From Takakia lepidozioides (Eukaryota > Plantae > Bryophyta): 64,000 nucleotides of DNA. Made by a program: the position numbers and the translations under genes. Positions 1-34,909 of this stretch are shown piece by piece. Below the pieces are notes generated by a model. That model did not search any database, was not told the DNA's origin, and was given only the letters and a program-made list of their open reading frames with translations. The DNA is taken from the NCBI GenBank assembly GCA_030704615.1, contig CM060733.1:26784001-26848000 (forward strand), in the 5' to 3' direction. Each line of letters opens with the position of its first letter. Position 1 is the first letter of the stretch.

Positions 1-3000
1 CCTTGAGCAGACTCTGCAAGCGATGGCGATCCTTTTGGGCATCGGGGTGCACGGTACCCAGCTTCTCCTCCTTGACTCGTACCACCACTTCCAACAGCTT
101 GATAGCGTCCTCCAGTCTGCATGCCACGGGAGGACATCGACTGTACTTATCGACTGTACTTAAGATTGGCGGTCCAAGTGTAACTAGGCCAAGCAATTAC
201 TCCACTTGAGTGTTACTCTAGACAAGTTAGCTGAATGGCAAGGACATGGCAAGGACATGCTGGAGGATTTTGTTGACTGCACTGGAATCAGTACTTAAGC
301 CTCGCCAAAGTTTGAAATTGTGCAACAGGTACACACTGAAATCTCCAGCTAGAAATCTAGAACAGATCAACCTGATGCGGACATAATTTGCATCCAAGGA
401 ATATGCTCCTCTGAAATTGAGAAGAGCGACTGAGGTGAAATGACAGTTCTTTATCAAGTTATGGTCGCAAAATTAGACCGCGTAAATGCAGCAACGGTGG
501 CGTTGGAGAGGGTACCTTCCAAGCACATCGTAGGCGCCGGCAAGATTACTGCACACATCAATAGTATCAAGATGATGGGCTCCACAAATGTCCTCCAACG
601 CACTCTTGGCCTCCTCAAATAAGGATGCAGCTTGCTGGATCTCCCCGAGCTCAACAAATGTTACACCCGTCTGATTCAATAGCATGCCTAATAGAGCAGT
701 GTTCCTCACCCCTCCATCCCTGAGCTTCAAAGCTGCACTCTTGAATGCATCCAAGGCAAGCGGGAACTGTTTCATCATATGGTAGAGAATTGCCATCTGG
801 GCTTCGATCCCACCCACTGACACTTGCTGACCTATCAATTCGTCATCGCAAACAAGGAAATATGTTAAAAGGAAATACATACATGTGTAAGAATGATTCC
901 TTCACTCCCTTCTTCCAATTCCTGTACTGAACGATAGTGGGTCCGTAGAGATTTTCCAGCTTTTTGCCTTTGTATGTTTCCAAGGGGATATTAAATACTG
1001 CAGGATTTCTCGATGTTCCCGCCGACAATTGACCCTTCTTGCATAATGACTTCTTAGGGAGCGAATGAAAGCTGATCGACGATATAAGGACTGAGATTGG
1101 TTACCTGGCAAGCTATCTTGGATCTTGAGCGCTCGCTGAAGGAGGCGGAGCGCTAACTCCTCTTCATTCAATTGCTCTAGGACGGCGGCAATGCCAGTCA
1201 ATCCTTGAACGATATCTTCAGGGGCATGTTCAGCCTCTTGCTCTCTATAGATCCGCAGTGCACATTCACAGTAGGTTTTTGCGTCTCGAGGTTTGTTGGT
1301 TCTAAGGTAGAGTTCCGCTAACCTCACATAAACAGACGCTGTCAACGCATGATTGTCCCCTTTCAAGGCCTTGAATGCCTCGAGAGCTTTTTGGTAGGAA
1401 AGTTCTGCTTCTAAGTCCCGACCCAGTGCTAGGAGGGCATCGCCAATGCTCGAATTGACAGCAGCCACTTCAATCTACCAACATCACTCGCATTCACAGC
1501 AGACTGTATGATCAGAAGTTTTAGGTTTCCCCTCCTTCCCCTTCCCCTCCCCCTCCCCACACCGCGCCCCACCCCCACCCTAGAAAGTGCAGAACTGAGA
1601 AGATATAGCATTTCTCCCCAAGCTGCAAAGAGGCTCCAATCTTTGATCTAGCCAGTCCTAGCATGCTCGAGGACCAGTTGCAACAGCTGAAGTGAAGCGG
1701 CACGTAAGTGGATAGTAAATTAATCTGCAATGTCTAGACTACCCTCGTAGTACTTTTAATGCATTCTTATGTTTGTCCAGATGGTATCAATGGACCCATT
1801 GATGATGTGATGCATAGCCTACCATACTTCAACCGAAGGCACTGCTACTTGTAAAGATATTTTTGCCTTGAATTAAAGCAAGATCAGACAGATACCTCGT
1901 CTTCATTGGCTAGGAAGGTTGCACTTGCTTGTTCCAAATTGTCCAAAGACTTTTCGTGGTCTCCTTGCGCACTGTAGATGAGTGCCAGGAGTTGGCGATC
2001 ACGAGCTTCCTCAAGAGAACCTACCTCGCCGTGTTCGTTATGAATCGCTAATGCATGCTCACACAAGGCCTCTGCTTCAGGAAATTCCATTGCCTGCACT
2101 CATAACATTGTGCCCACCACTTAGGCTCTCCTTAGGCTCTTTCTCTTGCCAATACGCATGCTAATCGTCCTTGTGAATCTCCTCTCTGGTTAGTCGACCA
2201 CATATGGAGGGTCCACTGGCCTCTTCCGTAACAGCAAGTTCAGCCGGGGAAAGCAGGGGACAACACCACCAAGAAGAGCAAGAGCGGTGCACCAAACCAA
2301 ATACCAGGCAACACTAGTGAGAATCAGATGCAAACCTTTAGCTACATTCACAGCCAAAACCGGGTGCTTAGAATTTATTTGGGTACTTGATCAAGCAGAG
2401 ACGTCAACCTTGAGCAAAAGTTATTCTAGAGCTCAATCTTCCCGCCAATGTGCTCTCTCGTTGTGACAGGCATCAATATGCTTTCAGTTACAGTTGAATC
2501 ACATTTACTTCTGAAGGTAATGGACCTCCTTCTTTCATGGTCAACAGAACTCCTTCAGACTGTAGCTCAAGGACCCAGAAAAAACCCTGGCGCCAACCTC
2601 CATAGATGGTAACGTAGTTCGATATAGAAAGTCTAGAATTCCGGTTAAGGCAATCCAGTAGGTATTTATATTGTATTTATACTTAAGCAGAAGGCGTTAG
2701 TTATATGCAGCATCAGAAAAGACTGAGATGAATACCCATTCTAATCAAGGGATTTTGTACAATGGAAGGACGAACTTTAGAGCAAGAAGAAGGGGGCAAC
2801 AAAAGGAGCCAACTGATGGCTCACTGACCTGCAAGTGAGCTTCAGCAATGTAGTGGCAATTCTCTCCGACCCGAGGATCCAAATCTCCCAGTATCACCTT
2901 CTGGACTTCCAAAGCAGCATGATAGGATTGCAATGCGGTTCCCTGTTTTCCAACTAAATTCAATGTATCACCAAGCTGCATATGCCCTGCGAATTTTGCT

Positions 3001-3983
3001 AGGGCGTGCTCCTCACCTTCATTCAAGTCCGGGATAGTTACCGAGTGCTGAAGAAGATGAACGGCATCTTCATATTGGCCAAGCCGGCAATGCAAGGCTG
3101 CTAATATATGAAGGCTGAGAACCAGGTCGAGGCTCGAACTTGCATTAGAGTATTTCTCATAAAACTTGACGGCCCGGGTGCTGTACTGAAGCGCCTTGAC
3201 TGGATTATCTCCCGAGGCATACAGTTTTGCAAGCTTGAGCAAATATGGACCCAGGTGGGGTATATCTGACAGAGTGTCATCATCTTTCATGTACGCATCG
3301 ATAATGGAAATGGGTATCAACTTTCGGGGCGCAGTACCTGGACTCACAACTTCATCATCGCTCTTGCTATCACTGAGACTGGTTGCTCTCCTTTGTGTGA
3401 CTCCCTGCCGGACCTTTGTAGAAGGACTTTCGGTCGTTTGGTTCCGGAGCATCCGGTCAAACTCCTGCCTCTTTGCAGCATCTTCAAAGGATGCTGCCTC
3501 CCAGGGGCCTGTTGCAAATGAGTCTTCCGCATACTCCTCTAGTGACCCCGCTACTTCTTCGTCCTCATTCTGGGATCCGTCGGTCTCGGGGCCAAATTGC
3601 TGCAATTTTCTGGGAACAAATTGTGATGAATGATGTGAGCCATTGGTCTTTCCATTGGAGAACAATTCGGTCTCACACACACCGTTATGTTGCTTTTCTT
3701 GCGCGATTTCCTCTGCTGGAGGCGCATTCTTTTTTCCATTTCTAGACACTTTTGCGGCCAAGCGTGGTACCTTAGCAGATGACAGTGATTTTTGGGCGAA
3801 CTCTGGGGATTTCTTTGGAGAAACTTTGGTGAATGTCCTCCAGGTCTTGCCCTGCGCTTTCGAGGAAGCACGTGAGATTGATTTTGTGCCCTTGCTCTTT
3901 CCATTGATAGCTGCAGGGGCCGATACCGTAAAGGCGATATCACTCTTCGTTGCCGGGGATCTCTCCATCACGAGGGGTGGCAT
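1..3983 (-). CDS. Kinesin light chain-related TPR protein (KLCR/CMU-like), multi-exon, 3' end beyond window edge
   Basis: GT-AG exons at 3983-2829, 2093-1896, 1474-1105, 831-516 and 116-<1. A disordered N-terminus is followed by KLCR-type TPR sequence (HLGPYLLKLA, LHILAALHCRLGQYEDA, FAGHMQLGDT, HALTASVYVRLAELY, HHLDTIDVCSNLAGAYDVLGR, EEKLGTVHPD). Confidence 0.9.
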
Positions 3984-6398: not shown

Positions 6399-7039
6399 TT
6401 AAAAGCGTGCAAACTGCAAACATCGGTGGATTAAGTTGGAAAATACAAGCTAATCTTAATGGCCAAGTGAATGTCTCCATAGGCTATATCGATTATCACC
6501 ATCATCTTTCACACATCCACTCCAACTAGATAGTCCAAGTGACTGTAAACATGGGACATATTAGCCACCCTTTCATTAGATCTATGAGAAAAGTGTGTTT
6601 TACGGTAAAAACCGAATCCAATGCACTAATATTAATATTAATATTAATATTAATATAATATATACTATATGACGCCTCCTAAATAAAGCGTAAATTATGG
6701 TGTCACTTGACCCCGAAGGGCTACTACCTTCCAGGAGGAAGGTGGACACCTTTGTGACACCAATAGGTGAATTGAATCGACAAGTGGTTGTCGAAGTAGA
6801 TGCAACATTATGGATTGCATAGAACAAAAGATGTCTGCAAATGACTCCAAAATGATTCTAGGGTTCTTTTGCTTAGTAGAGCTTCCCTTCTCCATCCTCT
6901 AGGGTAGAAATACCAATCATGGCGCACCAAACCAGTTAAATGAGCATAAATTGTTCTGATTTTTACCTATAAAGCCATATAAGATATTAATAAAAAAAAC
7001 CCTTCAAATAGGCTAAATTTCGTAAAGTATCTTGTATCT

Positions 7040-8183
7040 TCCAATTATGAGCTTTCACGACCCTAAGATCAGTGTTTTTTTATGGCAAGTGGCCAACACG
7101 GTTCTCAAGGTGGGCCAGTTTCTAAATTTCAATGATGCACTCCTCTGCCATTGTTGTGCCAACCAAACCATAGAAACTCTTGAGCACTGCCTTTTCCATT
7201 GTCTGGCACCCTCAAGCGTTTGGCCTCTCGCTCAAGGCTTTTACAGGTCTTGGGAAACCATGCACTTTGGATCCCTGGCAATTCTTCTTAACTACAACCA
7301 TAGGCAGAAATCCAAAGCTTCAGAATGTCCAGTTTTTGAAGCTCTAAGATGGTCTGTTCTCTGGAACATATGGAAAAGTCATTGCGCATGGTTCTTCAAC
7401 AAACAAAACACCTCGGCTACAGATATACTGTCTCTAGTTTTCTTTGATCTAACAATTGTGGCTTAAATAGCTTGGGCTTCCTTGTGTGTAGTGGCGGCCA
7501 AGAAGCCAGAACGTCTGCCCGCCCTCATCTCCAAGTTCAGGGCCACTTGGGGCAACAATGGGATCATTTGTTCATGCTCCAGTGACCTCACCTATGTTTG
7601 GGTAGACAGAAATCCGCCTTCATGGGAGGGACATAGAAATCCCCTCTTCGGCCTCCCCTGAATTCGACAGATCTGAGATCAACTAGGAAACATGTTCGGT
7701 CATCTTCAGCAGCGCGGCTCCACTTCCACCATTGAATTCCCCTTCTTGCTTGCTTTATTCCCTCCTAGCTACCCCCTCTCCCTCTCAACCCCCTGCTCCG
7801 TCTCTCTATGTTGCACGCCATTCCGTTCTACTTCTCCCTCACTTCCATCTCCTTAGGATTCCTCCCCACTAGACCCCCCTGCATAGTATAGACTTGGTTC
7901 CATTTGTCACACCCACGGTCAAGGCACTTCCTCATGGTGATCACTCATTATTTCAGGCTATAGGCCTTTGATCTTTTGGTGTCGACTATAGGCCCAGGCG
8001 CATAACTCTCGGATATTGGTCTTAGTTATCCGGCACGACATCCATGCGAACAGCCTTATGGCAATCTAAGGGTTTTAATTTTTTTCCCTTCAATAATTTC
8101 TCAATAAAACAACATCCAGGGCCGATGTCCCAAGTTCATTAAATTTATTAAAAAAATAAAAAATAAAAATAAAAATAAAAAAA
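7040..8183 (+). mobile_element. 5'-truncated L1-type LINE remnant (zf-RVT domain, 3' UTR, A-rich tail)
   Basis: ORF 7032-7466 has the zf-RVT pattern KISVFLW...CHCC...ETLEHCLFHC...VW...LWNIWK. A-rich tail at ~8149-8183. Confidence 0.75.
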
Positions 8184-8380
8184 CCATAGTAAGGGGGGTC
8201 AGTGGTTGCATATGGCCCACCTGACCCTGTCAATGTGGTTCAAAGACAACGAGTCACCGTGGTGGGTTCTATGCCAGCGCATTTTTTATTATATGTTTGT
8301 TCGAGTACTGAGTAGATTGCTCCCTTTGCAGCTTAGTGTGTGTCAATGATAGTTTAAAACATGATATGCAAAAATAACTA

Positions 8381-8673
8381 GCCAAGCATTAGATGGGGCC
8401 CTGGAGTTGAATGCGAGGGGCCCGGTTCCGCCAGCGTGGACCCCCCCCCCCACCGCTCCAACGCCTGCACACTGCGGGGCTGCTGCCGCACGACACTCCC
8501 TCCCGCGCCTCATGTTCCCGCTTCCAGGACATGAGACGTGCCCTCTCCCACATTCCCATCCCTCCTCCCATCCTGCCCTATGCATGGCATCGCCCTCCAT
8601 ACCCCATGCATGCCTTCATATTCCCCATGCTACATGGCATCCCAAGCATACATCATGCCCTCTTTCAAAAATC
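8381..8673 (+). repeat. Left TIR of Pack-MULE
   Basis: Reverse complement of 15168-15468 with scattered substitutions and small indels. Confidence 0.9.
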
Positions 8674-9041
8674 ATTCTGACATCTATTCAAATTTCAAAT
8701 GGCAAATCTGAAGAAAGAATGGACGTTGGGATATATGTCATATCGTCACATACACTCCAACCCTAATCCAGGGTTCTGCTACCCTCATCGTGCATTTCCT
8801 TGTACAATAGTTCTCTCCATGCCTTCCAAACGCGTCCCCACCCTGGCACTCTACGTTCACCTTCCATATTGAATTGTGTTTGTATAATGTTGCCTACATG
8901 AACATGTTGCATTGCATTGTAAGTTGCAATCGTGTGGATGTCTGGCCCACATGAAGAAGTTTGTGCTTGCATAGGGTCCAATTTGTTGTCTGATGCATGA
9001 ATTTCCATTGCAGCTATACATGCCCACAATCTGCCAGCACC

Positions 9042-11276
9042 ATGTGGTTGAATCTATGGCTGCCCAGGGGCCCACTGGTGGTTTTCACAGAGAAGTCCAA
9101 GATCACCAGACTTCAAACATAAGTGCGCAAAGGAGGCACGTTGGATAGCAGGTTGGTTGAACCCTCCTTGGGTGAAAGCAGAGCTGGCTGCCATGATACA
9201 AGGTCTAGCACAATGTGGTGATGCAAGGACACTATGTATGGCAGGGCGACTGAAAGACGCGGTGCACATTTTGAACTGGCCAAGATATTTCGGCAGACTC
9301 CGACACTTACGTCCGTCTCTTGGTGGAGTGCATCAACATGCAAGGCCTAGAAGAAGGAAAGCAAGTGCATGCCCACATTATCCGAACTGGGTTCAAGCCA
9401 AAAGTCTTCTTACTTAACACCCTTATGAACATTTACGCCAAGTGCAGGAGCGTGCTGGATGCACGGCAAGTGTTTAACAACGTGCCTAAACGAGTGATAT
9501 TTACCTGGAATATAATGATAGCAGGATATGCCAATTATGGGTGCGGGAGGGAGGCAATTGAGATGTATGAGCAAATGATGCAGGAAGGGACGACACCTAA
9601 TAAGGTGACATTCATATGCATTGGCAAAGCATGTGCCTGTCTAGCATCCCTGGAGAAGGGCAAAGGGGTCCATGCCGACATTATCAGAGCTGGGATTGCA
9701 CCAGATGTGATTCCTGGAGACTACCCTTGTTGACATGTATGCCAAATGTGGGAGCATGCAGTATGCGCCTCAAGTGTTCGATAATTATACTCATCATGGG
9801 TGTTGTATGGAGGCTTTTGAGATGTATGAGCAAATGATACAGGAAGAGGTGACTCCGGACAAAATAGCTTTCATTTGCGTTCTCAGGGCGTGTGGCAGCC
9901 TGGCAGCCCTGGAGAAGGGCAAAGAGGTTCATGCTAACATTATCAAATGTGGAATTCCACCGGATATCATCCTGGAGACTGCCCTCACAAACATGTACGC
10001 CAAATGTGGGAACATGAAGGATGCGCTTGAACTGTTTGACAACATGGCTGAGCGTGATGCTGCATCATGGAGCGCTATGATTGCAGGATATGCTCAGAAT
10101 CATTGTGGTAGGGAAGCTTTTGGCATCTATGACCACATGATCAAGGAAGGCGTGGCACCAAACAAGTCACATATACTCAATGCTTGTGCCAGCCTTGCAA
10201 GCCTGGAAAAGGGCAAAGAACTGCATGCTGAGATAATCAAAGTTGGAATCCCAGCAGATGTCATTCTAGACACTGCCCTTGATAACATTATGCAAAATGT
10301 GGGAGCATGGAGGATGCCATTCAACTGTTTGACAATATAGCTCAACGGAATGTGGTTTCATGGAATGCAGTGATTGCAGGATGTGGTCAGCATGGTTGTG
10401 CCAGGGAGGCCCTTCAACTATTTGAACAAATGCAAGAGAAAGGGTTGAAGCCAAATAATGTCACCTTTATTTGTGTTCTCTCTGTATGTAGCCATTTAAG
10501 GCGAGTGGATGAGGGTTGTCACTACTTTGATTACATGAATCAAGTTCATGGCCTTGCTCCTACAGTGGAGCATTCTGGCCGCATGGTGGACCTTTTTGCG
10601 CGTGCGGGAAAATTGGTTGATGCGGAGGAGTTTTGCCAACAGAATGTCTATCAAATCAGGTGCTTCAGTGTGGGGGGCCTTGCTTGGTGCCTGCAGAATT
10701 CATGGCAATGTGGAGGTAGCCGAACGTGTGGCAAAATGCCTCCTGCAGTTGAATCCGCAGGAGGCTGTGACTTATGTGTTGCTATCAAACATCTATGCTG
10801 CAGCTGGCAGGTGGGACGATTCAGCAAAAGTGAAAAAACTGATGTAGGACAGAGGTGTGAGAAAAGAACCAGGGCACAACTACATTAAGGTGGACAACCG
10901 GGTGCACACATTCGTTGAAGAAGAGAATTCGCATCCACAAATTGAGGCAATCCATGCCGAGCTGAAGAGATTGTCTATGTGCATGAAAGAGGCTGGGTAT
11001 GTACCTGACACACAGTTTGTATTGCATGATGTGGAGGTGGAGCAAAAAGAAGTTTCTCTTTGTCACCACAATGAGAAGCTGATGATTGCTTTTGGGCTCA
11101 TGAGCATCCCCCCTGGGATGCCCATCCATGTCATCAAAAACCTACGGATGTGTGGTGACTGCCACACCGCTACCAAATTCATATCAAAGATTATTGGTCG
11201 TACAATTGTTGGGCGTGATACCAACCGCTTTCACCACTTCCAAGATGGGGATTGCTCTTGTGTGGATTATTGGTGA
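9042..11276 (+). pseudogene. PLS-class PPR-E-DYW RNA-editing factor, disrupted
   Basis: PLS motifs (VVSWNAVIAG, CASLASLEKGKELH, MYAKCG), E domain, PG box (RKEPG) and a full DYW domain ending CSCVDYW. Several frameshifts, an internal deletion near 9785 and an in-frame TAG at 10845-10847. Start position approximate. Confidence 0.9.
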
Positions 11277-12429
11277 AAAAAGCAGCAAACGTGTTGCCTC
11301 AAGCAGGTAATAAACAAGTGTTTCATTGAAAACGTCTCAACTGTCCCTGTGAACTACCCATATGATCTCTTTACCACCAAAAACTTTAAAGTGATTCATT
11401 CATGGTGAATATTGCCATCCACGTGCAACACTGAAGTGCCATATTTATGGCAGGCCTTATTGCAGAGCAGTGTTGATTCATCCATGCCAACGATCACAAT
11501 CATAGACATTATCGAACAGCGGGAGTACCAAACTGACGGGAAGCTTCATTGCAGGGGAGAATGAATCACCAAACAGCTGAAGTATTGGATTGCAAGGTGT
11601 GTTAGTCCATCATGGTGATAGTCACCATCTGTGTACATCTTCAAACAGCTGGAGCACCAAATTCGCGGAAAGTCTTATTGGGGCAAAATATTGATTTATT
11701 CATGGTGATGATCACCATCCGCGTACATCAGTCAACAGCTGGAATACTGAATTCGTGGAAGCCAGGTGTTACCAGCTTCCACAAGAAACATGTTATGGAG
11801 TTGAAAGTTCTTTTACCAAAAAAGGTTGAACAATGGGATCACAAAATCATTGAGGATGCAAACGCACACATTCCTAATTGCTGAATGTAAAACGTCCTTT
11901 CCTTTTTGTTGCCAGAATCTGAAAAAATGCCTAGAATTGATAACAGAACCGACATTCTAGTAATATAGTCATGTACCATGTTCCAGTTTGCGTTTGGAAG
12001 TTCCATATACCCTCTTCTGCCGGCTGCCCGAACCGTTCCTATTCAAATGCCACCCAATCAAGTGACAAGGACACGTGTGCAGCCCAATCCCTTCCTACAC
12101 AACACGTGTACACTTTGGGATGGATGCATGCATGATTGTTTTTTCATGCAAGTTGGAGCAACTTTGGGATGTATGAACTGTCATGGATGAAGGTTAAAAG
12201 TTATCATGCTATGAATGAAAACACATACAGAAAGTATGAGTGCATATGTGCATATAGACTAAGTGCCTGTACAAGGGAATGATTCCATTAGTCATGAATG
12301 GTATCATGAAACCATAAGAGTGTAATACCATTCCCATCCCCAATGGGAGGAATGCATGCATGCAAGGTTTGAGATGGAAGTTGGACCCACTTTGAAGAAA
12401 ATATGGATATGCACTCTGTTGCATTCATG

Positions 12430-14720
12430 AAATTTCTAGGGCGTCCTAGGGGTCGTGCTGATGAGCCCAAAATCAATGGCCAGCTTCTCACTTTGGTGAT
12501 AGAGAGAAAATTCCTTTGGCTCCTCCACCACATCATGCAGTACAAAACGTGTGTCAAGCACATACCCCGCCTCCTTCACCTACCTAGACAATCTTCTCAG
12601 CTAAGCATGGATTTCCTTAATTCTGGGATGCAGTTTGTCATCTACAACAAAGGTGTGCGCCCTGTTGCCAACCTCATTGTAGCAGCGACCTGGCTCCTTC
12701 CTAACCCCTTTGACCTTCATCATTTTTCTCACCTTTGCACTATCATCCCCGCCTCCTTCATCTGCCCAAACAATCTTCTCAGCTAAGCATGGATTTCCTT
12801 AATTCTGGGATGCAGTTTGCCATCTACAATAAAGGTGTGCGCCCTGTTGCCAACCTCAATGCAGCAGCGACCTGGCTCCTTCCTAACCCCTCTGACCTTC
12901 AACATTTTTCTCACCTTTGCACTATCATCCCACCTGCCAGCTGCAGCATAGATATTTGATAGCAACACATAAGTCGCGGCATCTTGTTCATCCCACTTGA
13001 GAATAGATGTTGCAGCACGTTCAGCCATCTCCACATTGCCATGGATTCTGCAGGCACCAAGCAAGGCCCTCCAAACCATAGCATTTGGTTTCATTGGCAT
13101 TTCGTTAATGAGCTCCTCTGCCTCATCCAATTCCCTATATGTCCAAGAAGGTCCACCATGCAGCCAAAGTGCTTTATTGTCGGAGAGACACCATGATCTT
13201 GACTCAGGGAATCAAAGTAGCGTCTTCTTTCATCCAGTACAGTGTGGCTGCATGTAGAGAGAACACATATAAAGGTGATATTGTCCAGCTTCAAGCCTTC
13301 CGTTTGCATTCCTTCAAATAGTTGCAGGGCTTCCCTATGACAACCATGCTGGGCATATCCTGCAATCATAGCATTCCAGGACGCCACATCTTGTTCGACC
13401 ATATTGTTGAACACTCCCTTTGCATCCTCCATGCTCCCACATTTGGCATACATGTCCACGAGGGCATTGTTCAAAGTGACATTTGGTACAATACCAGCTC
13501 TGACGATGTCACCATTGACCTCTTTGTCCTTTTCCAAAACTGGCAGGCTTGCACATGCATTGCAAACACGAACAAACGTGATGTGGTCGGGCTTCACCTC
13601 TTCCTGCATCATTTGCTCATATGTCTGCAAAGCCTCAGTCCTGCGCCCTTGCTATGCATATCCTGCAATCATTGCATTCCACGACACCACCTCACGTTCA
13701 GCCATAGTGTCGAACACTCCATTTGAATCTTCAATGCTCCCACATTTGGCATACATGTCGAGAGCTACCAAGCTTGCACATGCCTTGCAAACACAAACAA
13801 ACATGATGCGGTCAAAATCACCCCTTCCCACATCATCTGCTCAAAGGTCTCCAAAGCCTCCATCCCGCGTCCTTGCATATCCTGCAATCATCGTGTCCAT
13901 CCATCATTTGTGACATTTGTTCCATATTGTCAAACAACCCCTGTGCATCTTCAATGCTCCCACATTTGGCATACATGTCCACCGGGGAAGTGTTCAGAAT
14001 GACGTCTGGTACTATTCCAGCTTTGACGATATCACCATGGACCTCTTTGCCCTTTTCCAAAGCTTCCAGGCTCGCACACGCATTGCAAACGCAAACAAAC
14101 GTGATATGGTTGGGCTTCACCCCTCCGCGCATCATTTGCTCATAGGTCTCCAAAGCCTCCATCCCACACCCGTGTTGTTCATATCCTGCGATCATCGCGT
14201 TCCATGACACCACATTTTGTTCAGCCATGTTGTCGAACACTCCCTCTGCATCTTCAATACTCCCACATTTGGCTTACATATCCAGCAAGGCAGTGTTCAG
14301 AATGACATCTGGTACCATTCCAGATCTAACAATGTCACCATGGACCTCTTTGCCCTTTTCCAAGGCTGCCAGGCTCGCACACGCATTGCAAACGCAAACA
14401 AACGTGATGTGGTTGGGCTTCACCTCTTCCTCCATCATTTGTTCATATGTCTCCAAAGCCTCGATACCACGCCCCTGCTCTGCATATCCATCTCCTGCGA
14501 TCAGTCTGATGAGTGGGCAAATCAGGCTGAAATAGATTGAACAAGAAGGTTCCCTCACCACATTGTCCTTGACTTTGTGTCATGACTGATGGAGGATTCA
14601 ACCGACCATCAACCCAAAAGGACCTCTTGTATATGCTGCTTGTGTCCATGGTGGGGTAATGTCCGATTGGTCTGTAAGAACCACCATGGTGCAGCTGAGT
14701 AGCCATAGATTGAAACACGA
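12430..14720 (-). pseudogene. PLS-class PPR-E-DYW (truncated DYW), disrupted
   Basis: PLS motifs in ORFs 14274-14561, 13833-14240 and 13091-13630; E domain 12783-13130. DYW remnant [13 protein letters not shown]...[18 protein letters not shown] lacks CxxC and the terminal DYW. Contains stops and frameshifts. Confidence 0.9.
12568..12931. repeat. Tandem duplication (~182-bp period) of E-end/PG-box segment
   Basis: CTAAGCATGGATTTCCTTAATTCTGGGATG occurs at 12601 and 12783. Confidence 0.9.
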
Positions 14721-15167
14721 CCTCCTAAGACCAAGTTGACCCTCCTAAGCACCTTATAAACACCACAGAAAAATACCAAATCGTGATACTAACAGGAAGA
14801 GCCAAACTTCTTCACCTCATACATTAAGAGAAAGCCACACCTTGCGATTACGGTTGTCCCACCATCGTGAAGGATCTTTAAAGAACTCATGCCAGCTCCG
14901 CTCCGTGCTCCAAGGTAGACTTTTGTGCCCGAAAATCCGGCAGCATCAACATTTTGCCAAGTTCCTTTACGGAGGGGTGTTAGTGAGCTTTCAACAACAT
15001 TCATGCTGGTAGGCTTTGGGCTCCATTGGAGTCTCCACAATGAGGACATACGAACATGTCCAAATGTACACAGATGTTAAACCAGCTTATGTCTGCAGTG
15101 TGGAGATTTTGGAGTGGTCTCTGAAAACTAGCAGGAGCAACTGAGCAGCGCCAGTCTTTGGGGACAC

Positions 15168-15468
15168 GATTTTTGAAAGAGGGCATGATGTATACTTGGG
15201 ATGCCATGTAACATGGGGAGGATGAAGGCATGCAGGGGGGATGGAGGGCGATGCCATGCATGAGGGCATGATGGGAGGAGGGATGGGGATGCGGGAAAGG
15301 GCACGTCTCATGTCCTGGCAGCGGGAACATGAGGCGCGGGAGGGCATGCCGCACGGCTGCTGCCGCGCGGTGTGCAGGCATTGGAGCAGGGGGTGGGCGT
15401 GGGGGGGGGTCCACGCTGGCGGAACCGGGCCCCTCGCATTAAACTCCAGGCCCCATCTAATGCTTGGC
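15168..15468 (-). repeat. Right TIR of Pack-MULE
   Basis: Reverse complement of 8381-8673. Confidence 0.9.
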
Positions 15469-15866
15469 AAATAACTAAAACACCTTAGCCAGAATAGTAA
15501 TCAGAAACACAACTTTGATATTGTGGCTGATTTAACTTATCTGTTACAACTGAGCCAGTACAGCTAGGCCTACCGTGGCTCTCACCCATCTGCTCAATCG
15601 AAGTGCATCAAGTCTACTGGCTCTTGCCATGGTCTCTTCTGTAGTACTTCGCCTTAATTAAATTAGGCTTGTATGCATTATCAAGCAACACACCACCTCT
15701 AAAGAACTTAATGAAAATGTCATCTTCTTCCTTATACCACATATTTCATTTTGTTTCTTCTTGCCTGGCTACAATTTTCGCTTCTCTCTCAAGTCGACGA
15801 GTAGTTGCTCTAGGCATTTTTCTTTGATCCGCTGTCAACACTTTTTGTGCTTTCTTGATCTCTCTT

Positions 15867-16080
15867 CATAATCAAAGTAGTCTTAAGATTGCTAACAATC
15901 CAGTTTCATGCCAGGACTAAACACATACAAGTTCATTATCATTACATTCGAGAGAGGACATGAACAAGGAAGTGGACTTACATCATATCCACTCGAGAGC
16001 AGTTAGCTGATTTCTTTACGAAACCCTTAGGGCGCACAAGGTTTGAAGAGATGAAAGACAAACTAGAAATCAGAAGTGCG
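15867..16080 (+). mobile_element. Ty1/Copia RNase H C-terminal remnant
   Basis: Degenerate translation NQSSLKIANNPV(F)HARTKHIQVHYHYIRE...EQLADFFTKPLGRTRFEEMKDKLEI. Confidence 0.8.
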
Positions 16081-17089
16081 GCCAATCTTCACGAATCAGC
16101 TCAACTCACTTCATTAGATTAATGTATATAGGATAAATAAGGTGTGAGAGGAGGTGTAGAAAATACACACCTTTATTTATGAAGTATATAGGTAGATAAC
16201 GCGTTTTAGGCCAGTCTGTACATTGAAACATTCTGCGTATCAGAGTGATTGTAGAGTGATTGTAGCTAACTCTGATTTTAGAGCATGCCCAGCGTAGGCT
16301 CACTAAACTGCCGCGCTATCCGTATGCTGGTGAGGCATATGGTGAGGTAGGCACGTTAGTTAGAGCGGCGGCTGGCAAGAGGCCCCCCCCCCAGCAACCC
16401 ACCATAACCGAAGGGGAGTAATGGCGTAGGCTGAGGTGACCGTGGGCCCCGTCGCCCCACTCTTCATTACGTGTGAGGCTGAGCGGTAGGTAACAGGGGA
16501 GAATGCCACACACCAAAGGGCAGGAAGCTAGAGCGGGAGGGCGACTATTTTTGGTGCCAACCTGTGTCGGGCGCTTATGGGCGGGGATGGGGGAGGTACG
16601 CAAACACAACGCTCGTAGGCACTATGCCATTTTTGAAGCTTGGGTGGGTTGGGTGGCTACAGTAGAGGGGAGTGTAGGAAATTGGTAATTTGGTTGGAAG
16701 TGGAACACCAAAATTTGTCGAGTATATTTTTTGTAAGCCAGCTGTGTGTTGGCTAAGCGAGGAATTGTAGCATGCCTCATGTGGCTATCTGTAGCACATT
16801 TGGGCACTAGAATGGCAATTTTGCCAGCTGCGGGGTGGGTAAAGTCACGGCAACATAAGCATGAACACATCATTCCAGGCCAACGATTTCTCTAACACTG
16901 TAGAGCGATCAACTATTGCCCATGCAAGGGCATATCTCAATGCAGAAAGCAACAGAACCCATGTTGCAAGTCAGTCTTTTTCAAAGCTCTCCTCATGGAC
17001 ACCTGAATGAAGATTATGTGCTGGGTTTGAAGTACCTCTGGCCAATTGTATACCCGACAAGAAGGTGTGGGACGGTGGTAACTGTGCAG

Positions 17090-20787: not shown

Positions 20788-23090
20788 GGGAGATAATAGG
20801 AATAATGTAAGAACTTAATGCAAGCGCGTCAGGACGGTCCAGCCCTGACACCCGTACCGCCGGTTCTTCGCCTCCGGCAGACATCGAAAGGCAGCCGGCT
20901 GGGCTCGGTCAATCCCTCCCCACCCCCGCCCTCATCCCATCGGCGTCGTCGCCCCAGGCGCGTCGTCGCCCCCTGCGTCCTCGTTCTGCGACACCAGTCC
21001 ACCGCTTCCAGCAGTCCGCCAGTTCCTGTAACCCCCGCCCCGGGTTCAACCATCACCCCCATGTAACCCTCTGTAACTCCGCCGAGTGTAACCCACATTA
21101 CCATGTAACCCTTTGTAACCCATATAACCCCATGACCCTCTGTAACCCATGTAACCCTCTATAACACCGCAGAGTGTCACCCCCACCCCTATGTAACCCT
21201 CACTACATGTAACCCTCTGTAACACTTTGCAACCCATGTAACCCTATGTAACCCTCTGTAACACCGCAGAGTGTCGCCCTCACCCCTTATGTAACCCTCA
21301 CTCCATGTAACCCTCTGTAACCCATGTAACCCTCTGTGACCCTTTGTAACCCTCACCACCATGTAACCCTCTGTAACACCGCAGAGTGTCACCCTCATTC
21401 CATGTAACCCTCTTTGACCCTCTGTAACCCTCACTCCATGTAACCCTCTGTGACCCTCTGTGACCCTCTATATCCCTCACCAGGTGTAACCCTTACCTCC
21501 ATGTAACCCTCTGTAACACCGCAGAGTGTCACCCTCGCCACCATGTAACCCTCACTCCATGTAACCCTCACAAACCCTCTGTGGCTCTGTAACCTATGTA
21601 ACCCTCTGTAACACCGTAGAGTGTCGTCCTCACCCCTTATGTAACCCTCTGTAACCCATGTAACCCTCTGTGACCCTTTGTAACCCTCACCACCATGTAA
21701 CCCTCTGTAACACCGCAGAGTGTCACCCTCACCCCTATGTAACCCTCTCTGACCCTCTATAACCCTCACCACCATGTAACCCTCTGTAACCCATGTGACC
21801 CTCTATATCCCTCACCAGGTGTAACCCTTACCACCATGTAACCCTCTGTAACACCGCAGAGTGTCACCCTCGTCACCATGTAACCCTCCGTAACCCTCAC
21901 AAACCCTCTGTGACACCGCAGAGTGTCACCCTCATCCCCATGTAACCCTCACTCCATGTAACCCTCTGTGACCCTCCGTGGCTCTGTAACCCATGTAATC
22001 CTCTGTAACACCGTAGAGCGTCACCCTCACCTCTTATGTAACCCTCACTCCATGTAACCCTCTGTAACACATGTAACCCTCTGTGACCCTTTGTAACCCT
22101 CACCACCATGTAACCCTCTGTAACACCGCAGAGTGTCACCCTCACCCCTATGTAATCCTCACTCCATGTAACCCTCTCTGACCCTCTGTAACTCTCTGTA
22201 ACCCATGTAACCCTCTGTGACCCTCTATATCCCTCACTAGGTGTAACCCTTACCACCATGTAACCCTCTGTAACACCGCAGAGTGTCACCCCCATCCCTA
22301 TGCATCCCTCACTCCTTGTAACCCATGTCCTCTGTGACCCTGCGTAACCCGTGTAACCCTCTGTGACCCTGTGTAACCCATGTAACCCCATGTAACCCTC
22401 ACTCCATGTAACCCTCTCTGACCCTCTATAACCCATGTAACCCTCTCTGACCCTCTATAACCCTCACCAGGTGTAACCTTCACCACCATGTAACCCTCAG
22501 TAACCCTCTGTAACACCGTAGAGTGTCACCCTCACCCCTGTGTAACCTCACTCCATGTAACCCTATGTGACCCTCTGTGACTCTCTGTAACCCTCACCAG
22601 GTGTAACCCTCACCACCATGTAACCCTCCGTAACCCGTTTATCCCTCTGTAACACCGCTGAGTGTAACCCTCACTCCATGTAACCCTCCCATGTAACCCT
22701 ATGTCACCCTCTGTAACCCATGTAACCCCATGACCTTCTGTAACCCTTTGTAACCCATGTAACCCTCTGTTACTCCGCGAGGTGTAACCCTCACTCCATG
22801 TTATCCTGCATCGTGTAACCCCAATGTAAGCTTGTATCATGTTATCCCATATACCCCTCTCCGTGTAACTCCAGTTCCTCGTAACCCCATCATCCCTGTA
22901 ACCCTCTGCACGTCAGCGCTTTAGCTCCGCCTCGTGTAACCCTCATTGTGCAACTCTCACATTGTAACCCCACCATGTAACCCCGATACTGTATCAATCC
23001 CCCCCGTGTAACCCCCGATTGTGTCACTCATAGCTCGTGTCACCCCGGATCCTTTATCCCCAACGCATGTCACCCCTGTTCGTGTAGCCC
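20788..23090 (+). repeat. Left arm: ~270-bp GC-rich terminal sequence plus higher-order TGTAACCC arrays
   Basis: Very dense CATGTAACCCTC / TGTCACCC repeats; mirror image of the right arm. Confidence 0.9.
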
Positions 23091-23308
23091 CTTAGTGCCC
23101 GGCAAAAATTGGCGGGCTCCAAGAGGTGTCAGATATTTTGAATTCAAACCTGGGTTACACGATTCGGTGACATCAAAACCCACGTGTAACTCCATTATCG
23201 CTCGTCATTTTCACCAGGTGCGTAGACGACGTGCAGTCCCGAGGGCTCCGCTGCGTTGCCCGCGTGTATTATGCGATTTGTACTGTACTGGTGGTATTGT
23301 TGCTGCTA

Positions 23309-26300
23309 ATGGCATGTGCTGCCGCGAAGGTGCTAGACGAGGAACGCAAAGCAGCATTGGAATCAAATGGTTTGAAAGATGAGGCGGGAGAACTCTGTCA
23401 TTTGCAGCATTTGGTATCTCATTTGAAATGCATCCTACAGCTGCCCATAGACGGGCTTTTCAATCACACAAACCTCCGTTGGATACGCCAGGTTTCCCAG
23501 GGAAAAGGGAAACGGATATCCATCGAAGTAGCTGTCGTTCCATGGTCTCGCATTCCTGACTTTCTGGAGGGAGAAAGGAGTAGAGTGGATGGGAAGACCC
23601 AATTTTATGTTCAAGATCGAAGGTACCGTGAGTTGCCAGATTTGACAACACCGCGTGCAAACAGTTATCGTCAGTGGCATAAGTAAGTCACTTATGAGGG
23701 TTGTATAACATTCCCAGCCCCACTTCTTTCTGCTAGTCTAGCAAAGTCGTATATGGCGATAACCCTCCTCGCTTTATATGCTTTTTTTGCAGGTACCACT
23801 GCTGCTACGGCCCGATAGATAGGCGCACGGACCCGCCGATTGTGAAGAAAAAAGAAAAACCGATAGCAGCCTCCGATAATCAAACAGCAGTCAAGCGAAT
23901 CAGACGTAAGGCAGCGGATTTCGGAGAGTCATACAAACGTGGGTGTACGTGTAGCTTCAAAGTTGGCCAGTGTTTTCTAGATTCAGAGTTGGCAATCATC
24001 ACATACTTCCAGAAACAGCATGTGGATGCAAAAGGAAAGCCATGTCATGGTTCAGCTGACCCCTTTCCCATTTCTCGCGATTCGTGCATGCCCCTCGTCT
24101 CAGCCAAGATATGAAACAGTGGATCGTCGATAGTCTTCGCAGTGGCCTATCTCCAGCTATGATTATGACACAACACACTCAACAACTCCAGGAAGCTTGT
24201 GCGTCTCAGCCAGGCATGGAGTGGAGTCGCGATTGTTTCTTGTTCGAGTACGACGTGAGAAACATTGCCGACAAGCTTGCGATTGAGAGTTACAAAAAAC
24301 ATCCAGATGATGCACAAAGTGTACGTATGTGGGTCAATAGCAATCCTGAAAGCGTCTTCTTCTACCATGAAGAGACAGCGCCAGTGGCGGGTGATTTGAA
24401 GTTCGTAATTGGAATACAAACGGAGTGGCAAAAACAGAAAATGATCGACTTGGGACACAACCGTGTGGTATCCTGCGATGCAACATTTGGGACCAACGAA
24501 AATAAGGTATTCGTGTCACGCTTTACCTTTCATTGCATTCTGAAATGTGAGTGCCATGCAACTGTTGCCAATATTTTAACGCTCACCTTATTCATTTTTG
24601 TACCATTGCGACATTGCAGTTCCCAATGTATACCATGATGGTGTTCGACGAATGGCTCAACGGCATACCTGTTGCTTATATTATATCAGCGAGAAACAAA
24701 ACGACTGACTTGAGCCCCTGGATGAAACGTCTTCGCGACCGACTTCTTCAGAGCAAACCAGATTGGAGGCCAAATGCTTTTGTTGTCGACGATGCAGACG
24801 CAGAAATCAATGCTATCAGGTACACGGCTAGAAGTTACAATGTTCTGAGTCACACTACAAGTTGCATGCACGAGGGGTTTCATGGATCGGGCTACACTGC
24901 TGCTAGTTACACTGAGAATCACAGTAAGAGTTAAACTGCCAGTTACACGAGGGGGTGCATTGCTGCCTGTAACACTTGGAGTTACACTGTCAGTTGCTCG
25001 AGGGGTTACATGGATTGGGTTGCAGTGCTGTCTATTACACTGAGGGTTACACTATCAGTTAGACAGATGGTTATACTGCCTTGAGTTGGACGGAGGGTTA
25101 CACTGCTGTGAGTTAGACCGAGGGTTATACTACTGTGAGTTAGACCGAGGGTTACACTGCTATGAGGTAGACAGAGGGTTACACTGCGAGTTACACAGGG
25201 AGTTACACGGCGTGTCATCCGCAGTCCTACATGGATTAGGTTGCACTGCTATAGCATGTGAGTTACACTGGGAGCATCGCAGAGGGTTGTATGGGTTGGG
25301 TCGCTCTGAGAGTTACACGGTGTAACATGGATTGCGTTACAGCGCTGCGAGGGGTTATATGTGTTGGGTTACACTGCTGTGAGTTTCACTGATAGTTACA
25401 TGACCAGATGCACGAGGGGTTACATGAGTCACACTACTAAGAGTGACACTTTGAAGAGTTACACTTCTACGAGTTACACTGCGAAGAGTTCCTCTGATAA
25501 GAGTTACACTGACAAGAGTTACACTGATGGATTGGGTGGCATTTGATGTGTGTGCGTGCAGGGAATCGTTTGGGGACGTAGCAATATTTCTATGCCTTTG
25601 GCATGTTCGCCGCGCTTGGCTGAAACATTCGTGGCGTAAGATGCCCGATCCATACACTCGCAATGCTGTTTTGAAACAGCTTGGCGACGTAATGTACGGC
25701 ATTAACGCCTGTGTGGGAGTCACCCCAGAAGAGTGGGCGCTGGAGCGACTGGAAGATTTGAATTATTCCTATCCGCTTGCGCGTGACTTCCTACGTTACA
25801 TCAGAATGGAATGGGTCCCAAAACTGAGCATGTGGATCACGGGGGCTCGTTATATTCCCCACGCAAGTCAGGATACTAATGCCGCAATTGAATCTTGGCA
25901 CGGAAATTTGAAGGCTCGTTTACGCTCGGGAAAGCAAAGGCTTGATGGCAGGAGAATCGATTGGCTGATCAGCGAACTCGTGGGTCCTGTTCTAACCCAC
26001 TATTGGTATAGAGATAACTTGAAATCGAAAGGCTTCAAAAGGAATGTACGACAGGAGGAATTTATCAGTAATGTTGTTTGGACTGCAAGGGAGATCCCTG
26101 ATGTCAATGTTCATTTGCCCACTGTTCCTGGTCATCCGGCGATTGTGGATAGTGTTCAAACGGCCGGTCGAAGCTACACAATCTATGCACCTGCGACCAC
26201 CTGGGCTTGTTGCGATTGTCCATGGGCTTTGAAGGGTAACTTGTGCAAACATCAAATCCGCGTTCTTCAATTGATGAAGCCAAATCTGAAGGAAGGGCTT

Positions 26301-26708
26301 ATTGTGAAGCTCTGTGGCACAAAGCTCGGGACCATTCATGGAGGTCTTCACATGTTGATGAAATCGGAACTTCCAGATATTGATGCAGAGGAGGAAGTTG
26401 TGAATCTAGCAGAGCCTACGGAGTGCTCAGCATCATCCCGGCGTGGTCGGCAGGAGCCATCGGATGTTTCATCAATTGAATCTGAGATGAAGTCCCTGTC
26501 GCTTCTTGGCAATGAGAGTGAAACAATGCGCAAACATTTGCTTGCCGAGCTTCGTTGTGTTCGTGGGAGGCTGTCCACTTTACAAGTTAGAATCGACAAA
26601 GGTCTGTTGCACCCTCTTCAAGCAGTTCCATTCATAAAAAATGATGATGGAAACAACATGTCCCTTGCCAGGAAAGTAGATTTTGTAGACCGGTTCCGTA
26701 GTAAGTGA
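23309..26708 (+). CDS. MULE DDE transposase with SWIM zinc finger
   Basis: Exons 23309-23682, 23793-24506, 24620-24819 and 25562-26708. D in SCDATF, D in VVDDADAE, CxxH in CLWH, E in TNAAIESWH; SWIM CDCPWALKGNLCKH. One frameshift near 24060-24085. Confidence 0.9.
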
Positions 26709-28057
26709 CCATTGAGTCCATTGGCAATGACACTTACTTTGTGATCACCAAGTTTAATATGAAGTACATGTCTGTTCATGGGTTGTTATTCACTTTGCCA
26801 TTCCATCCACATTCAACCTATGTAACCCACTCAATGGGACACCCATGGGCCGGGGTGACACACCGCAGGGTTACACTGTCTGGGGTTTCATAACGTAACA
26901 TAGCTCTACTTAGTGTAACTTGCATCTGTGGTACTCCACACAGTGTAACACAGATGAGTGTGAACCTCTTCAGTGTAACTCATTGTGGTGTAACTCCAAG
27001 TGTAACTGCAATGTAACTATCAACAGTGTAACCTAGTATGTAACCCCATAGAATATTGCTGTCAGTGGTGTAACTCTGAGAACAATGTGACTACAATGTG
27101 ACTACAGGGTCTGGGTTAGTCTGCCGGGGTTACATGACCCTTCAATACAGAGTGGGAAGATGTTGAAGTCGAGCACCTTTAGTCACCAACACTAGCCCCT
27201 GTATGTGTAACCCCTCTATGTGTAACCCAATTTGTGTGTAACCCATGGACGTGTAATCCATGAGATAGATAATCATTCCGTTCAACCTATGTTATGGACC
27301 AGTGTAGCCCTCCGGAGTGTAACTTGTTGTTGTGTAACCCCAAGAAGTATGTATCCCGACCATATGTAACCCCCATTGATGTCACCCCATCGCATGTAAC
27401 CCATTGTACAATTTGGGGTGCACGCTATAAACCCCGATGCTACATCACCCCATCTTATGTATCCCCACGACACGTAGCCCTTGTATAGGCAACCCTGCCC
27501 ACTTTCATTGTGCACAGTGTAACTTAGAACTGTGTAACCCTCTTGAGTGAGTGTAACCCAGAGTGTTGTAACTCCAAGAAGTATGTAGCCCGACCAGATG
27601 TTACCCCCACACTATTGTGACCCCATCGTATGTAACCCATTGTACATAGCCCTCATGTATGTAACCCCATGTAGTATAAATCTGAGAACTTCAGTGCACA
27701 AACACTTCAGTGCGAAAAAAATAAAAAATAAAACAAATGCGCATAGTCGAGGTGGGGTTACATGCCACGAAAGTATACTGTTTCAGCAACGTGACCCTGA
27801 CATAGCCAGGTATGTAACCCATAAGTGTAACCCCACGTTGTGAGACCCGGCATGGTGTAACCCATCACTTATGTGTGAACCCACAGAGTGTAAGCCCATT
27901 GCCCCAGGGCCCAAAGGTGTACCCAAGTACTTGTCTATGATTCCACTTCATGTAACCTTATAAGGTGTAACCCCATGTAAGCCCATTGCATGAAACCCAA
28001 ACTATGAAGTGTTACGAACAAACCACATAGAAGCAAAAATGCATCAAGAGACGCTAT

Positions 28058-30180
28058 TTATTTCTTTGGCCATCTGACCAAGTCTTTGTCCATCTCGTCA
28101 CACAGCCAACTAATCATATGAGTACGGGAAGCTATCATGGTTGACTCGTTGAACCAACTTGCAGTAAACGCCCGCCTATGACGGGTTCGATCTTCTGTGG
28201 TTTTCACATTGAACTTCCACTCCAAGTAAAATTGCACAAAACAAAGTGCATAATAGCCGCACTCCCAACAGCTCCGTTGTTGGGGGACACTGGCCTCAAA
28301 CCATTCCATCCTCTCCATGACGTAACTGAAGTCATCAGATCCAGGCATGAAATCAAAGAACGCTATGGCAAAATTTCGCAAAATTCCTTCAATGAGTTTG
28401 GGTCGGGCAATGGTTTTATGGGAGTCCAAATGTACTATCCGACCTCGGCGCTCTAAAACAGCTACACTCCAGTGATCACTGCAACACAAACAAAGCCGTT
28501 ACGTCAGAATAGAAAAAAACATCTCCAATGAAACCCATTGTGGTGTAACCCAGTAGTGTAACCCTTTGTACTGTAACTCTAAACGGTGTTACACAACTAG
28601 TCAGCAGTCACTAGTGCAACTCAGTCTAGAATAGAGGAGTGTAACCCAACATGCTCAGTCAATGCTGAAATTACTTACTCGAAGACAATAGGGATGACAA
28701 CCACGTCCACAAGATCTCGATTCTTTGTGAACACCATCCCTCGGGCATCCTGAGTGTACCATTCTTGCACCAACCCGAATAGCGTCTGCAGATCGTTACC
28801 ATTGGTACGCATGACATGCCATTGAAAAGGAGCACAGATGACAAACTCAGGTGCGATAGCCTTAAACAATTTGGCCTCCAGAAGTTTGTTGTAACCCGAG
28901 AGCAATGCATCTGTGACAGTTGCTCTTATTTTATACATCGGCTCAAAATCTGTCTCTTCCAAGTAAAACTGTAACGGACTAGAAGCCAGGAAGGCATCGC
29001 CATAATAAAACTTCACTTCGGGCGCCCCAGGAGGGTCCGACACCATTCTGAACTTTGTCAAGTACCGTTGTTTTAGTCTGCACAACAAACCGCACATTAC
29101 GAACATTACGATGCATCATACAAGAGTTATAATCAATATTCAAAATCAGAGAGGATCAAAGTACAATGAGGTACCTCGAACGCTCCCGCAAGTGCTTGGC
29201 CAGGACCTCTTGCTGCTGGACAACGTCAACCTCCGAGACCCCTGCACTTTTGCCTTTCGGTTTGGTTCGCTGTTTTTTGGGTGCGACAAGAACAGATACT
29301 TCTTTGTCAGCGCTAGGGGGTTCAGCCAACCGCTTTCTTTGAGCAGGCGGCCGTTTTGACCTCCTGGGATTCTCTGCAACCCTGACAATGCCGCCGATAG
29401 GGGGAATTTCTGAGCCAGAGGTGCCTTGTTCTGAGTTTGCTGCAAGTGCTGAAGACTGCACTCCCTCGTCTGAGACGTGCTGGGAAGGTGATTGACCAAG
29501 GGCAGAAGTGTCACAGCTCACCTCCTCGGTGCTACCCCTGTCAGTGTAACCCTTCTGTTCAAACCCCTTGTCACGCTTCTTAGTGTCACCCTTCTCTTCG
29601 GCTACCTCCTCAGTGTCACGATTCTCAGTGTCACCCTTCTCAATGTCACCTTCTCTTCGGCTACCTCCTCAGTGTCACTCTTCTTAGTGTCACCCTTCTC
29701 TTCAGCTACCTCCTCAGAGTCACGCATCTCAGTGTCGCCCTTCTCTCCGGCTACCTTCTCAGTGTCACCCTTCTCTTTGGCCGCATTATCAGTGTCACTC
29801 TTCGCAGTGTCACCCTTCTCATCGGGTTCCTTCCCAGTGTCACTCTGCTGAGTAACAATCTTAGTGTGTCACCTTTGCAGTTCCACTCTTCTCAGTGTTA
29901 GATGCTCCGCAACATCTTCTCTTCGTGACTCTCCACAGTGAAACGCTTCTCAGTGTGACCCTGCTTTGTGTCACCCTTCCAACTGAAAACCTTTCCTCGG
30001 TGCACCTTCCCCGTGTCACCCTGTCGATGTCACTCTTCTTTGCATCAACCTCCTCAATGCCATCCTTGTTGTGTCGCCCTTCTCAGCACCCTCCAAAGAC
30101 CATGTTGACTAGCAGAAGACCGTCATCCGTCGCGACTAGTGGCCGTGGCAAAGGGTGTCACCTTCCACGACTAGGGTAGT
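28058..30180 (-). CDS. Ulp1-like (peptidase C48) SUMO-protease domain protein, MULE cargo
   Basis: Exons ~30180-29175 (acidic EKGDT repeats, frameshifted), 29077-28679 and 28478-28058. Catalytic H (DHW), D (HLDS), Q (VPQQ) and C (ECGYY) are present, preceded by VVIPIV. Confidence 0.8.
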
Positions 30181-30589
30181 GGAATAATTACATCCATGAC
30201 AGTTTTGTTACACTCACTGACATCTACATGTGGGTTGGCTGTGGAGTGTCACCCCTATCAGTGTAACCCATGTCAAGTCACTCTCAACGGAAGTTGCAGT
30301 GTTCACGGGCAAATGGTGTGTCACCCACGACAATGGTCCCTCACGACATTGTCAGCCACACCGGTATCGTAGTGTCACCCTGAGGGTGCAGTGTAACCCT
30401 CCTTCCCTGTTGCTCCTCTGCTGCACAGTGTAACCCTGAGGTGCAGTGAAACCATCCTTCCCTGTTGTCCTCTCTGCACAGTGTCACCCTGAGGTGCAGT
30501 GTAACCCTCCTTCCCTGTTGCTCCTCTCTGCACAGTGGCCCCTGAGGTGCAGTGTAACCATCGAGTTTCAGGGCATCCTCCCTTTGCCA

Positions 30590-33500: not shown

Positions 33501-33593
33501 CTCAGTGTACCAAAAGCGAACTCGTTCGCCATCCCTTTTCAAGTGATCAAATGGAATAGTAGCCTCTCCAGGGAACAAATAACAATCAGCCAT
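30590..33593 (-). CDS. Unknown spliced ORF with N-terminal C2HC-type zinc-finger-like motif (separate gene or 5' half of the Ulp1 gene), disrupted
   Basis: ATG at 33593. After a 1-bp indel it reads FKCPYCGAVKVDKSRLNRHIVDGTAAC. Probable exons 33593-~32787, 32520-31646 and 31164-~30590, separated by motif-filled introns. Contains frameshifts and stops. Confidence 0.5.
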
Positions 33594-34909
33594 GACAAAG
33601 AAAAAGCTGACAGAAGAGAAGAGAAGAGCAAGAGCAAGAAAAGACAAGACAAGAAAAGACCAAGACTTGTGAGAATTCCGAAGAATGCACAACAGGGAGC
33701 ACGCACAGCAAGGAGTGCAGGAAGAATATGAATGGCTGCGAGAAGGGGAAAACTGAACAATGATCAAAGAACGAAGAACGAAGCTAGCTAGATGTCACCC
33801 GTAAGGCACGTCGGTTAAGCGAAAGACGGCGGTTCATTAAAATCTGGCGGCTTGCAATCAATTATATCCGCACTGACTCACACGTGTATGAGTTGCAATC
33901 CCGTGTCACCCGGAATAGCGGAGTGTAACCCGTAACCCTACACTTGTGAGCGCGACAAACCGGCCAGTACTCGAATGCCAGGCACGTCGAGTGTAACCCT
34001 CCGTCAGGTACCCAGATATGATGTAACCCTTCGTCACAACCTCATGTACCCCTAGTCTATGTGACTCCCGAACACAACATCGATGTAACCCTGTCATATC
34101 AAACCATTAGTATGCAACCTCCAGGTAAACATGGTCAATGTAATGCCCCACCCATGTAACCCTAGCCTATGTGGCTCCGCGAGCGCAACATCCACGTAAC
34201 CCATCAAACATGTCAACCCATCTAACCTCCATTACTAAAACCGTCTACCAAGCTAGCATGTATTGAGAAAGAAAACACCGTGTAACCCCTGTGTGTAACC
34301 ATACCACACGTGAGGTAGTCATATAAACCATCAGACATGTAACCGGTTGACAGTGCTTGCAAAACACGCATGATTCGATACGTATTGCATCCATAATAGC
34401 GATGAGTAGGCTGCCCCGGCTGGTGTGTGAACAAAAGATACACGAGAGGAGAGTGAATGGGCACCCCGTCAAATGAGCGGCTGTTTGCATGGCTAGACCG
34501 AAAGAAACAAAACCCTTTCCTAATGCGGATCTTAGGAATACCATAGCCATCGGGGACGGTGACAAAACAACAAGAATGACATTGAGAAAGAAAAAGGATA
34601 GAGACAACCGTATCAATCGTAGAGAAAACCGTGGTAATAAATTTGACGGATCGTTGCACGGAAAGAGTTGTCTTGTATGTTGCTGGGATGACGATACTGA
34701 ATTGAATGAACTACAAATCTTTCGCATTGATGTGTGAAGCCGATTGGGCACCATGGGAATTGCAGAAAGCTGATGCCCCAAAGCAAAAAAACGAGCGAGC
34801 TAAGAATCTGGAAACGGATGGAGAGAGCAAATTAGGGTTTCGGCCTCTATTTAAACCTCCATTCGGCGTCGGATAGTTTACACGTGTATGATGTACACGA
34901 GGCGGTGAT

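Follow-up and report, generated by a model that had tools for sequence, protein, structure and literature searches.

Land plants have organelle RNA-editing factors by the hundreds to thousands, and how these families were built is an open question that is usually answered with retroposition. Near-complete PPR-DYW genes carried by a family of DNA transposons would provide a second, testable route, and the locus described here, from the moss Takakia lepidozioides, raises the question of whether such carriage has taken place. The locus lies within the 64-kb stretch of DNA that we analysed (hereafter the window), and a preliminary description had read it as a Pack-MULE carrying a pair of PPR-DYW genes. 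Our analysis makes it very probable that the locus is a DNA transposon of the non-autonomous Mutator-like kind (Pack-MULE-type), present here as one decayed copy, and that it moved as a unit. The features on which this reading is based are collected in Table 1.

Table 1. Parts of the TIR-flanked element and of its PPR cargo, with positions in the window.
Feature	Position	Strand	Basis and remarks
Left TSD, AAATAACTA	8372..8380	.	Direct reading; same as 15469-15477
Left TIR, 293 bp (62% GC); contains a poly-C tract and the CATGGCATC motif twice	8381..8673	+	
Left sub-terminal region, non-coding	8674..9043	+	No Pfam match; unrelated to right counterpart; multi-copy in reads
Copy A, PLS-PPR-E-DYW pseudogene	9044..11276	+	ORF map, frameshift-aware alignment, Pfam, N-terminal frames
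Spacer between the 3' ends of copies A and B	11277..12438	.	No protein domain or poly(A) trace; short internal repeats; low-copy in reads
Copy B, PLS-PPR-E-(half DYW) pseudogene	12439..14718	-	ORF map, alignment, Pfam
182-bp tandem duplication in the E/E+ region of copy B, two copies, 94-95% identical	12565..12928	-	
Right sub-terminal region, non-coding	14719..15167	-	
Right TIR, 301 bp	15168..15468	-	
Right TSD, AAATAACTA	15469..15477	.	Direct reading

Without its TSDs the element measures 7,088 bp. When the left TIR was aligned with the reverse complement of the right TIR, 270 of the 292 aligned bases matched, with 22 mismatches and four indel events (7.5% different; JC distance K = 0.079). 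The terminal 20 nt, GCCAAGCATTAGATGGGGCC, are identical at both TIR ends and occur exactly twice in the 64 kb, in inverted orientation, where shuffled sequences lead one to expect no occurrence. The 9-bp sequence AAATAACTA is repeated exactly, directly outside both termini. The TIRs of about 300 bp and the exact 9-bp TSD that had been claimed for this locus are thus both confirmed, at 293 and 301 bp for the former and in direct contact with both termini for the latter. The inner edge of the TIRs is sharp (8673 and 15168), and the two arms align again only in the PPR coding parts. Each TIR also contains two CATGGCATC motifs and a 21-bp sub-repeat, which could be candidate binding sites.

The two PPR copies are convergent, tail to tail, with both pointing inward, and PPR homology begins ~370 bp (copy A, ~9044) and ~450 bp (copy B, ~14718) inward of the TIRs. 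This arrangement agrees with the preliminary description, in which two PLS-PPR-E-DYW copies each start a few hundred bp inside a TIR and point inward. The statement that they make up almost the entire interior does not hold, as the copies fill ~69% of it; a spacer of 1.16 kb separates them, and sub-terminal DNA of 370 bp (left) and 449 bp (right) lies between them and the TIRs. Pfam matched none of 14 ORFs taken from the spacer, the sub-terminal DNA and the TIRs, and hence gave no transposase domain, in line with the claim that the element carries no transposase; an Rfam search of 7000-17000 returned nothing. The spacer has a repeat structure of its own (11380-11760 and 12116-12394): a ~90-bp unit that carries small palindromes (GGTGAT..ATCACC) is present in ~three diverged copies, and a 51-nt repeat pair includes CATGCATG. 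Four of the five sites of CATGCATG in the 64-kb window fall within the element, where the TIRs and the spacer hold two each.

The surroundings of the insertion site contain features of other kinds. An ORF at 7032-7466, 0.9 kb upstream of the insertion site, encodes a zf-RVT domain (the zinc-binding region of reverse transcriptases, E = 6e-6) and looks like the remnant of a non-LTR retroelement. A 412-aa ORF with TPR repeats (TPR_12 and TPR_10) lies at 2745-3983 on the reverse strand. When the two flanks were joined into a virtual empty site, no open frame ran across the junction, so coding continuity supplies no independent proof of the insertion.

Copy A retains most of the architecture of an editing factor. 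Pfam identified PPR repeats, an E motif and a full DYW_deaminase domain (profile 1-93 of 93, E = 1e-39) in which the motifs HxE (HNE), CxDCH (CGDCH) and CSC..DYW (CSCVDYW) are all retained. Its 3' end is the native stop that follows ...CSCVDYW, and no poly(A) was found after this stop. Frameshift-aware alignment to a full-length relative (P0010) placed frameshifts near 9722, 10288 and 10643 and a stop at 10847. Two in-frame deletions have removed 15 and 3 codons, and the N-terminal part contains at least one additional shift near 9300. Since about three close relatives among the contigs lack the extra base at 10631, beside the frameshift near 10643, this lesion appears to be private to this copy. 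The neutral expectation for copy A derived from K = 0.079 is ~3 new stops and ~13 indels, compared with the one stop and ~6 indels observed; the estimate presumes that the TIRs were identical at insertion, which need not hold, and the dating is therefore rough. The lesions of copy A may be the product of neutral decay since insertion, in which case the gene may have been open on landing.

The damage is heavier in copy B, which lacks the catalytic half of the DYW domain. Here Pfam again identified PPR repeats and an E motif, but the DYW domain is halved (profile 1-42 of 93) and ends at 12439, and the coding sequence has suffered at least seven stops, at least six frameshifts and a 26-codon deletion. 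Contigs of paralogues continue beyond the end of copy B, exactly at this point (12440), with the expected IKNLRVC coding sequence, which identifies copy B as 3'-truncated. At 13763-14474 copy B contains a repeat with a period of 303 bp (2.4 copies, 81% identity), which we read as a young intragenic duplication of PLS triplets.

Neither copy has an uninterrupted reading frame, and only copy A has a complete DYW deaminase with its HxE and CxxC zinc ligands. Both are pseudogenes, and the locus today encodes no editing factor. The cargo announced as a pair of PPR-DYW genes is accordingly not what we found, since both copies are multiply broken and copy B is in addition truncated at its 3' end.

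The relation between the two copies was assessed against a third PPR-DYW copy in the window (copy C, ~43.5-47.2 kb), which is also broken, has no TIRs and lies ~30 kb away. In the best 1-kb alignment copies A and B are ~72% identical, and the identities of A with C and of B with C are 70.5% and 71%, respectively. Because A and B are no closer to each other than either is to copy C, they are different members (paralogues) of a very large PLS-E-DYW PPR family. A foldback structure or a recent inverted duplication was rejected as the origin of the pair, given that the arms cannot be aligned between TIR and PPR and that A-B identity equals A-C identity. The divergence of 28% between A and B far exceeds the 7.5% between the TIRs, so the element most likely already carried both copies when it inserted here.

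Copy C itself is a PLS-PPR-E pseudogene on the reverse strand (43500-47200) in at least six ORF pieces, and no flanking inverted repeat was found around it. Where copy B has its 182-bp duplication, in the E-motif region, copy C likewise has a tandem duplication, of 230 bp (43753-44210, 97-99% identical). Outside the element, this TIR-less paralogue is one candidate for a parental sequence, at only ~70% identity; a second is a contig ~96% identical to 9995-10288, which comes from a run guessed to be RNA.

The mechanism that we propose is read from the anatomy of the TSD and TIRs. The element, having no enzyme of its own, would depend on a partner outside the window to provide transposase in trans; this transposase would recognise the ~300-bp TIRs, excise the element and reinsert it, and a 9-bp staggered cut at the target would be repaired to give the TSD. 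The cargo, sequence from two members of the PLS-E-DYW family lying tail to tail, would have been aboard before this insertion. Gap repair is the accepted route by which Pack-MULEs capture host sequence. No autonomous partner with the same TIR was found within the 64-kb window. The only autonomous MULE in the window, a giant element at 20788-37235, has an unrelated TIR and was for that reason discarded as the source of the transposase. This MULE, 16.4 kb in length and 5 kb away, has TIRs of ~1.5 kb that are 92-99% identical and made of short GTAACCC-type repeats.

The abundance of the element type was assessed with Logan contigs of public runs from the same organism, at least 80% alike, which were placed on 8100-14090 (5,991 nt, from the left flank into copy B). 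In the DNA run X1 the summed contig depth, which by the caveat of the tool is not a copy number and does not count loci, was 89 over the left flank (8100-8299), 8115 and 4974 in the two TIR bins (~55-90x flank), and 3517 and 5354 in the left sub-terminal bins (~40-60x flank). Over the PPR repeats it ranged from 15,000 to 1.3 million, and over the spacer from 359 to 1492 (~4-17x flank). Set against the flank, these values suggest that dozens of loci share the TIR together with the left sub-terminal DNA and the 5' part of copy A, and that a handful share the spacer. Because the depth on the TIR and the sub-terminal DNA is far above that of the single-copy flank, it indicates that the two together form a family of several dozen copies in this organism and that the element type has been amplified. 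Variant contigs show that a C missing from the left TIR at 8579 is present in most other TIR copies. Together with the long TIRs, the exact 9-bp TSD, the lack of a transposase and the host-gene cargo, this multi-copy TIR family leaves the Pack-MULE reading of the locus well supported.

Two runs guessed to be RNA yielded contigs of relatives of two parts of the element: the spacer (~92% identical) and 9995-10288 (~96% identical). These RNA-guessed contigs barely reach the TIR and sub-terminal region, paralogues swamp them, and they give no sign that this very copy is transcribed.

Searches beyond the organism were made in collections that do not contain the source genome. Ten ORFs of the element had no match in a collection of 15 billion proteins, and an ORF running through the TIR had no relatives in protein collections. 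With a 201-aa PPR piece as query no protein exceeded 54% identity, and with the DYW piece none exceeded 65%. The loci of the best DYW matches (L002 and L003) contained no TIR-like sequence and were set aside. The top DYW match itself (P0001; L003 10001-12979, assembly GCA_000150535.1) is a 652-aa predicted protein to which the query matched in 12 separate stretches, suggesting reiterated DYW pieces, and it adjoins a normal PPR-E-DYW gene. A 22-nt core of the TIR, scanned against metagenomes, gave one GC-rich bacterial contig (L001), which we regard as a chance match.

The arrangement of the locus could also have arisen in other ways. The PPR copies might have reached a small non-autonomous MULE only after its insertion here, through retroposition or ectopic repair, in which case they were never carried by the transposon. 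The extreme abundance of PPR-DYW sequence (tens of thousands of contig pieces fall on the PPR parts) and the unrelated sub-terminal regions of the two arms speak for such late entry. We nevertheless consider it improbable: with no poly(A) trace following copy A, it is less likely that retrocopies landed in an element already in place, no separate repeats surround either copy, and two independent insertions into one 2-kb target would be improbable in themselves. Moreover, depths are similar (~40-60x flank) from the inner TIR through the sub-terminal DNA to the PPR 5' region, which suggests that these parts are contiguous in many loci. It is harder still to credit that the boundaries have no common origin, with two independent solo TIR fragments flanking a resident convergent PPR pair, or that the TIRs belong to an element of another superfamily, and we give these variants the least credence of all. 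The exact 9-bp duplication at both outer edges, for which the chance is ~4e-6 at fixed positions, argues by its direct contact with the termini for one insertion of one element. As regards the superfamily, there is no transposase or autonomous partner that would link the TIR to Mutator, and our assignment, made on TSD length and TIR length alone, is a textbook comparison in which a 9-bp TSD and ~300-bp TIRs fit Mutator and not hAT (8 bp), CACTA or PIF (3 bp).

A different kind of explanation concerns what the inverted pair might do. MicroRNAs can, in one model, be born by inverted duplication of their target genes, and by analogy a read-through transcript that folded the two arms together could serve as a hairpin source of small RNAs that dampen PPR-DYW genes. 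The arms are 72-79% complementary over ~2 kb, exact complementarity is seen in 36 21-mer matches and in runs as long as 26-29 nt, and the TIRs would contribute a stem of ~290 bp. Such a role would nonetheless seem very improbable, as the overall complementarity is low, the pattern of decay looks neutral and the TIR and sub-terminal region are almost bare of contigs guessed to be RNA. A decayed, non-autonomous Mutator-like element that inserted with its PPR cargo thus remains the preferred reading.

A single dead copy on its own demonstrates movement of sequence, not spread of function. That such elements expanded the working repertoire of editing factors, or shuffled editing specificities as the preliminary description proposed, is a plausible and testable idea, though we consider it rather unlikely. 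In the literature that we searched, no paper connected capture by Mutator-like elements with PPR or DYW editing factors. The expansion of PPR genes in early land plants has been attributed to retroposition, and for Takakia lepidozioides a total of 2,016 PPRs was reported, with dispersed duplication predominant and limited features of retroposition (PMC13386178, Mol Biol Evol 2026). Carriage by DNA transposons could help to explain these dispersed PPR duplicates with few retroposition marks. In its strongest form, the proposal would be that a Mutator-like family in Takakia took up complete PPR-DYW genes without introns and multiplied them as intact pairs between TIRs, and that cut-and-paste transposition, beside retroposition, contributed a real share of the ~2,000-gene PPR expansion and new editing specificities. 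We put this forward tentatively and regard it as rather unlikely; if it were true, amplification of intact pairs would explain why PPR duplication in this moss is dispersed and bears few retroposition marks.

The retroposition model (PMC13386178) and transposon carriage have in common that both yield dispersed, intronless PPR copies; unlike what that model describes, the present element lacks poly(A) and has the hallmarks of cut-and-paste transposition, TIR and TSD. The closest resemblance is to the Pack-MULEs of rice, maize, Arabidopsis and Lotus, with which it shares long, GC-rich TIRs, a 9-bp TSD and the lack of a transposase, as well as an interior of host-gene sequence from more than one locus that includes a truncated fragment, in this case copy B. 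It differs from them in that both cargo pieces are long and come from one gene family, and in that the host is a moss. Furthermore, whereas typical Pack-MULE cargo consists of short exon fragments, copy A extends to its native stop codon.
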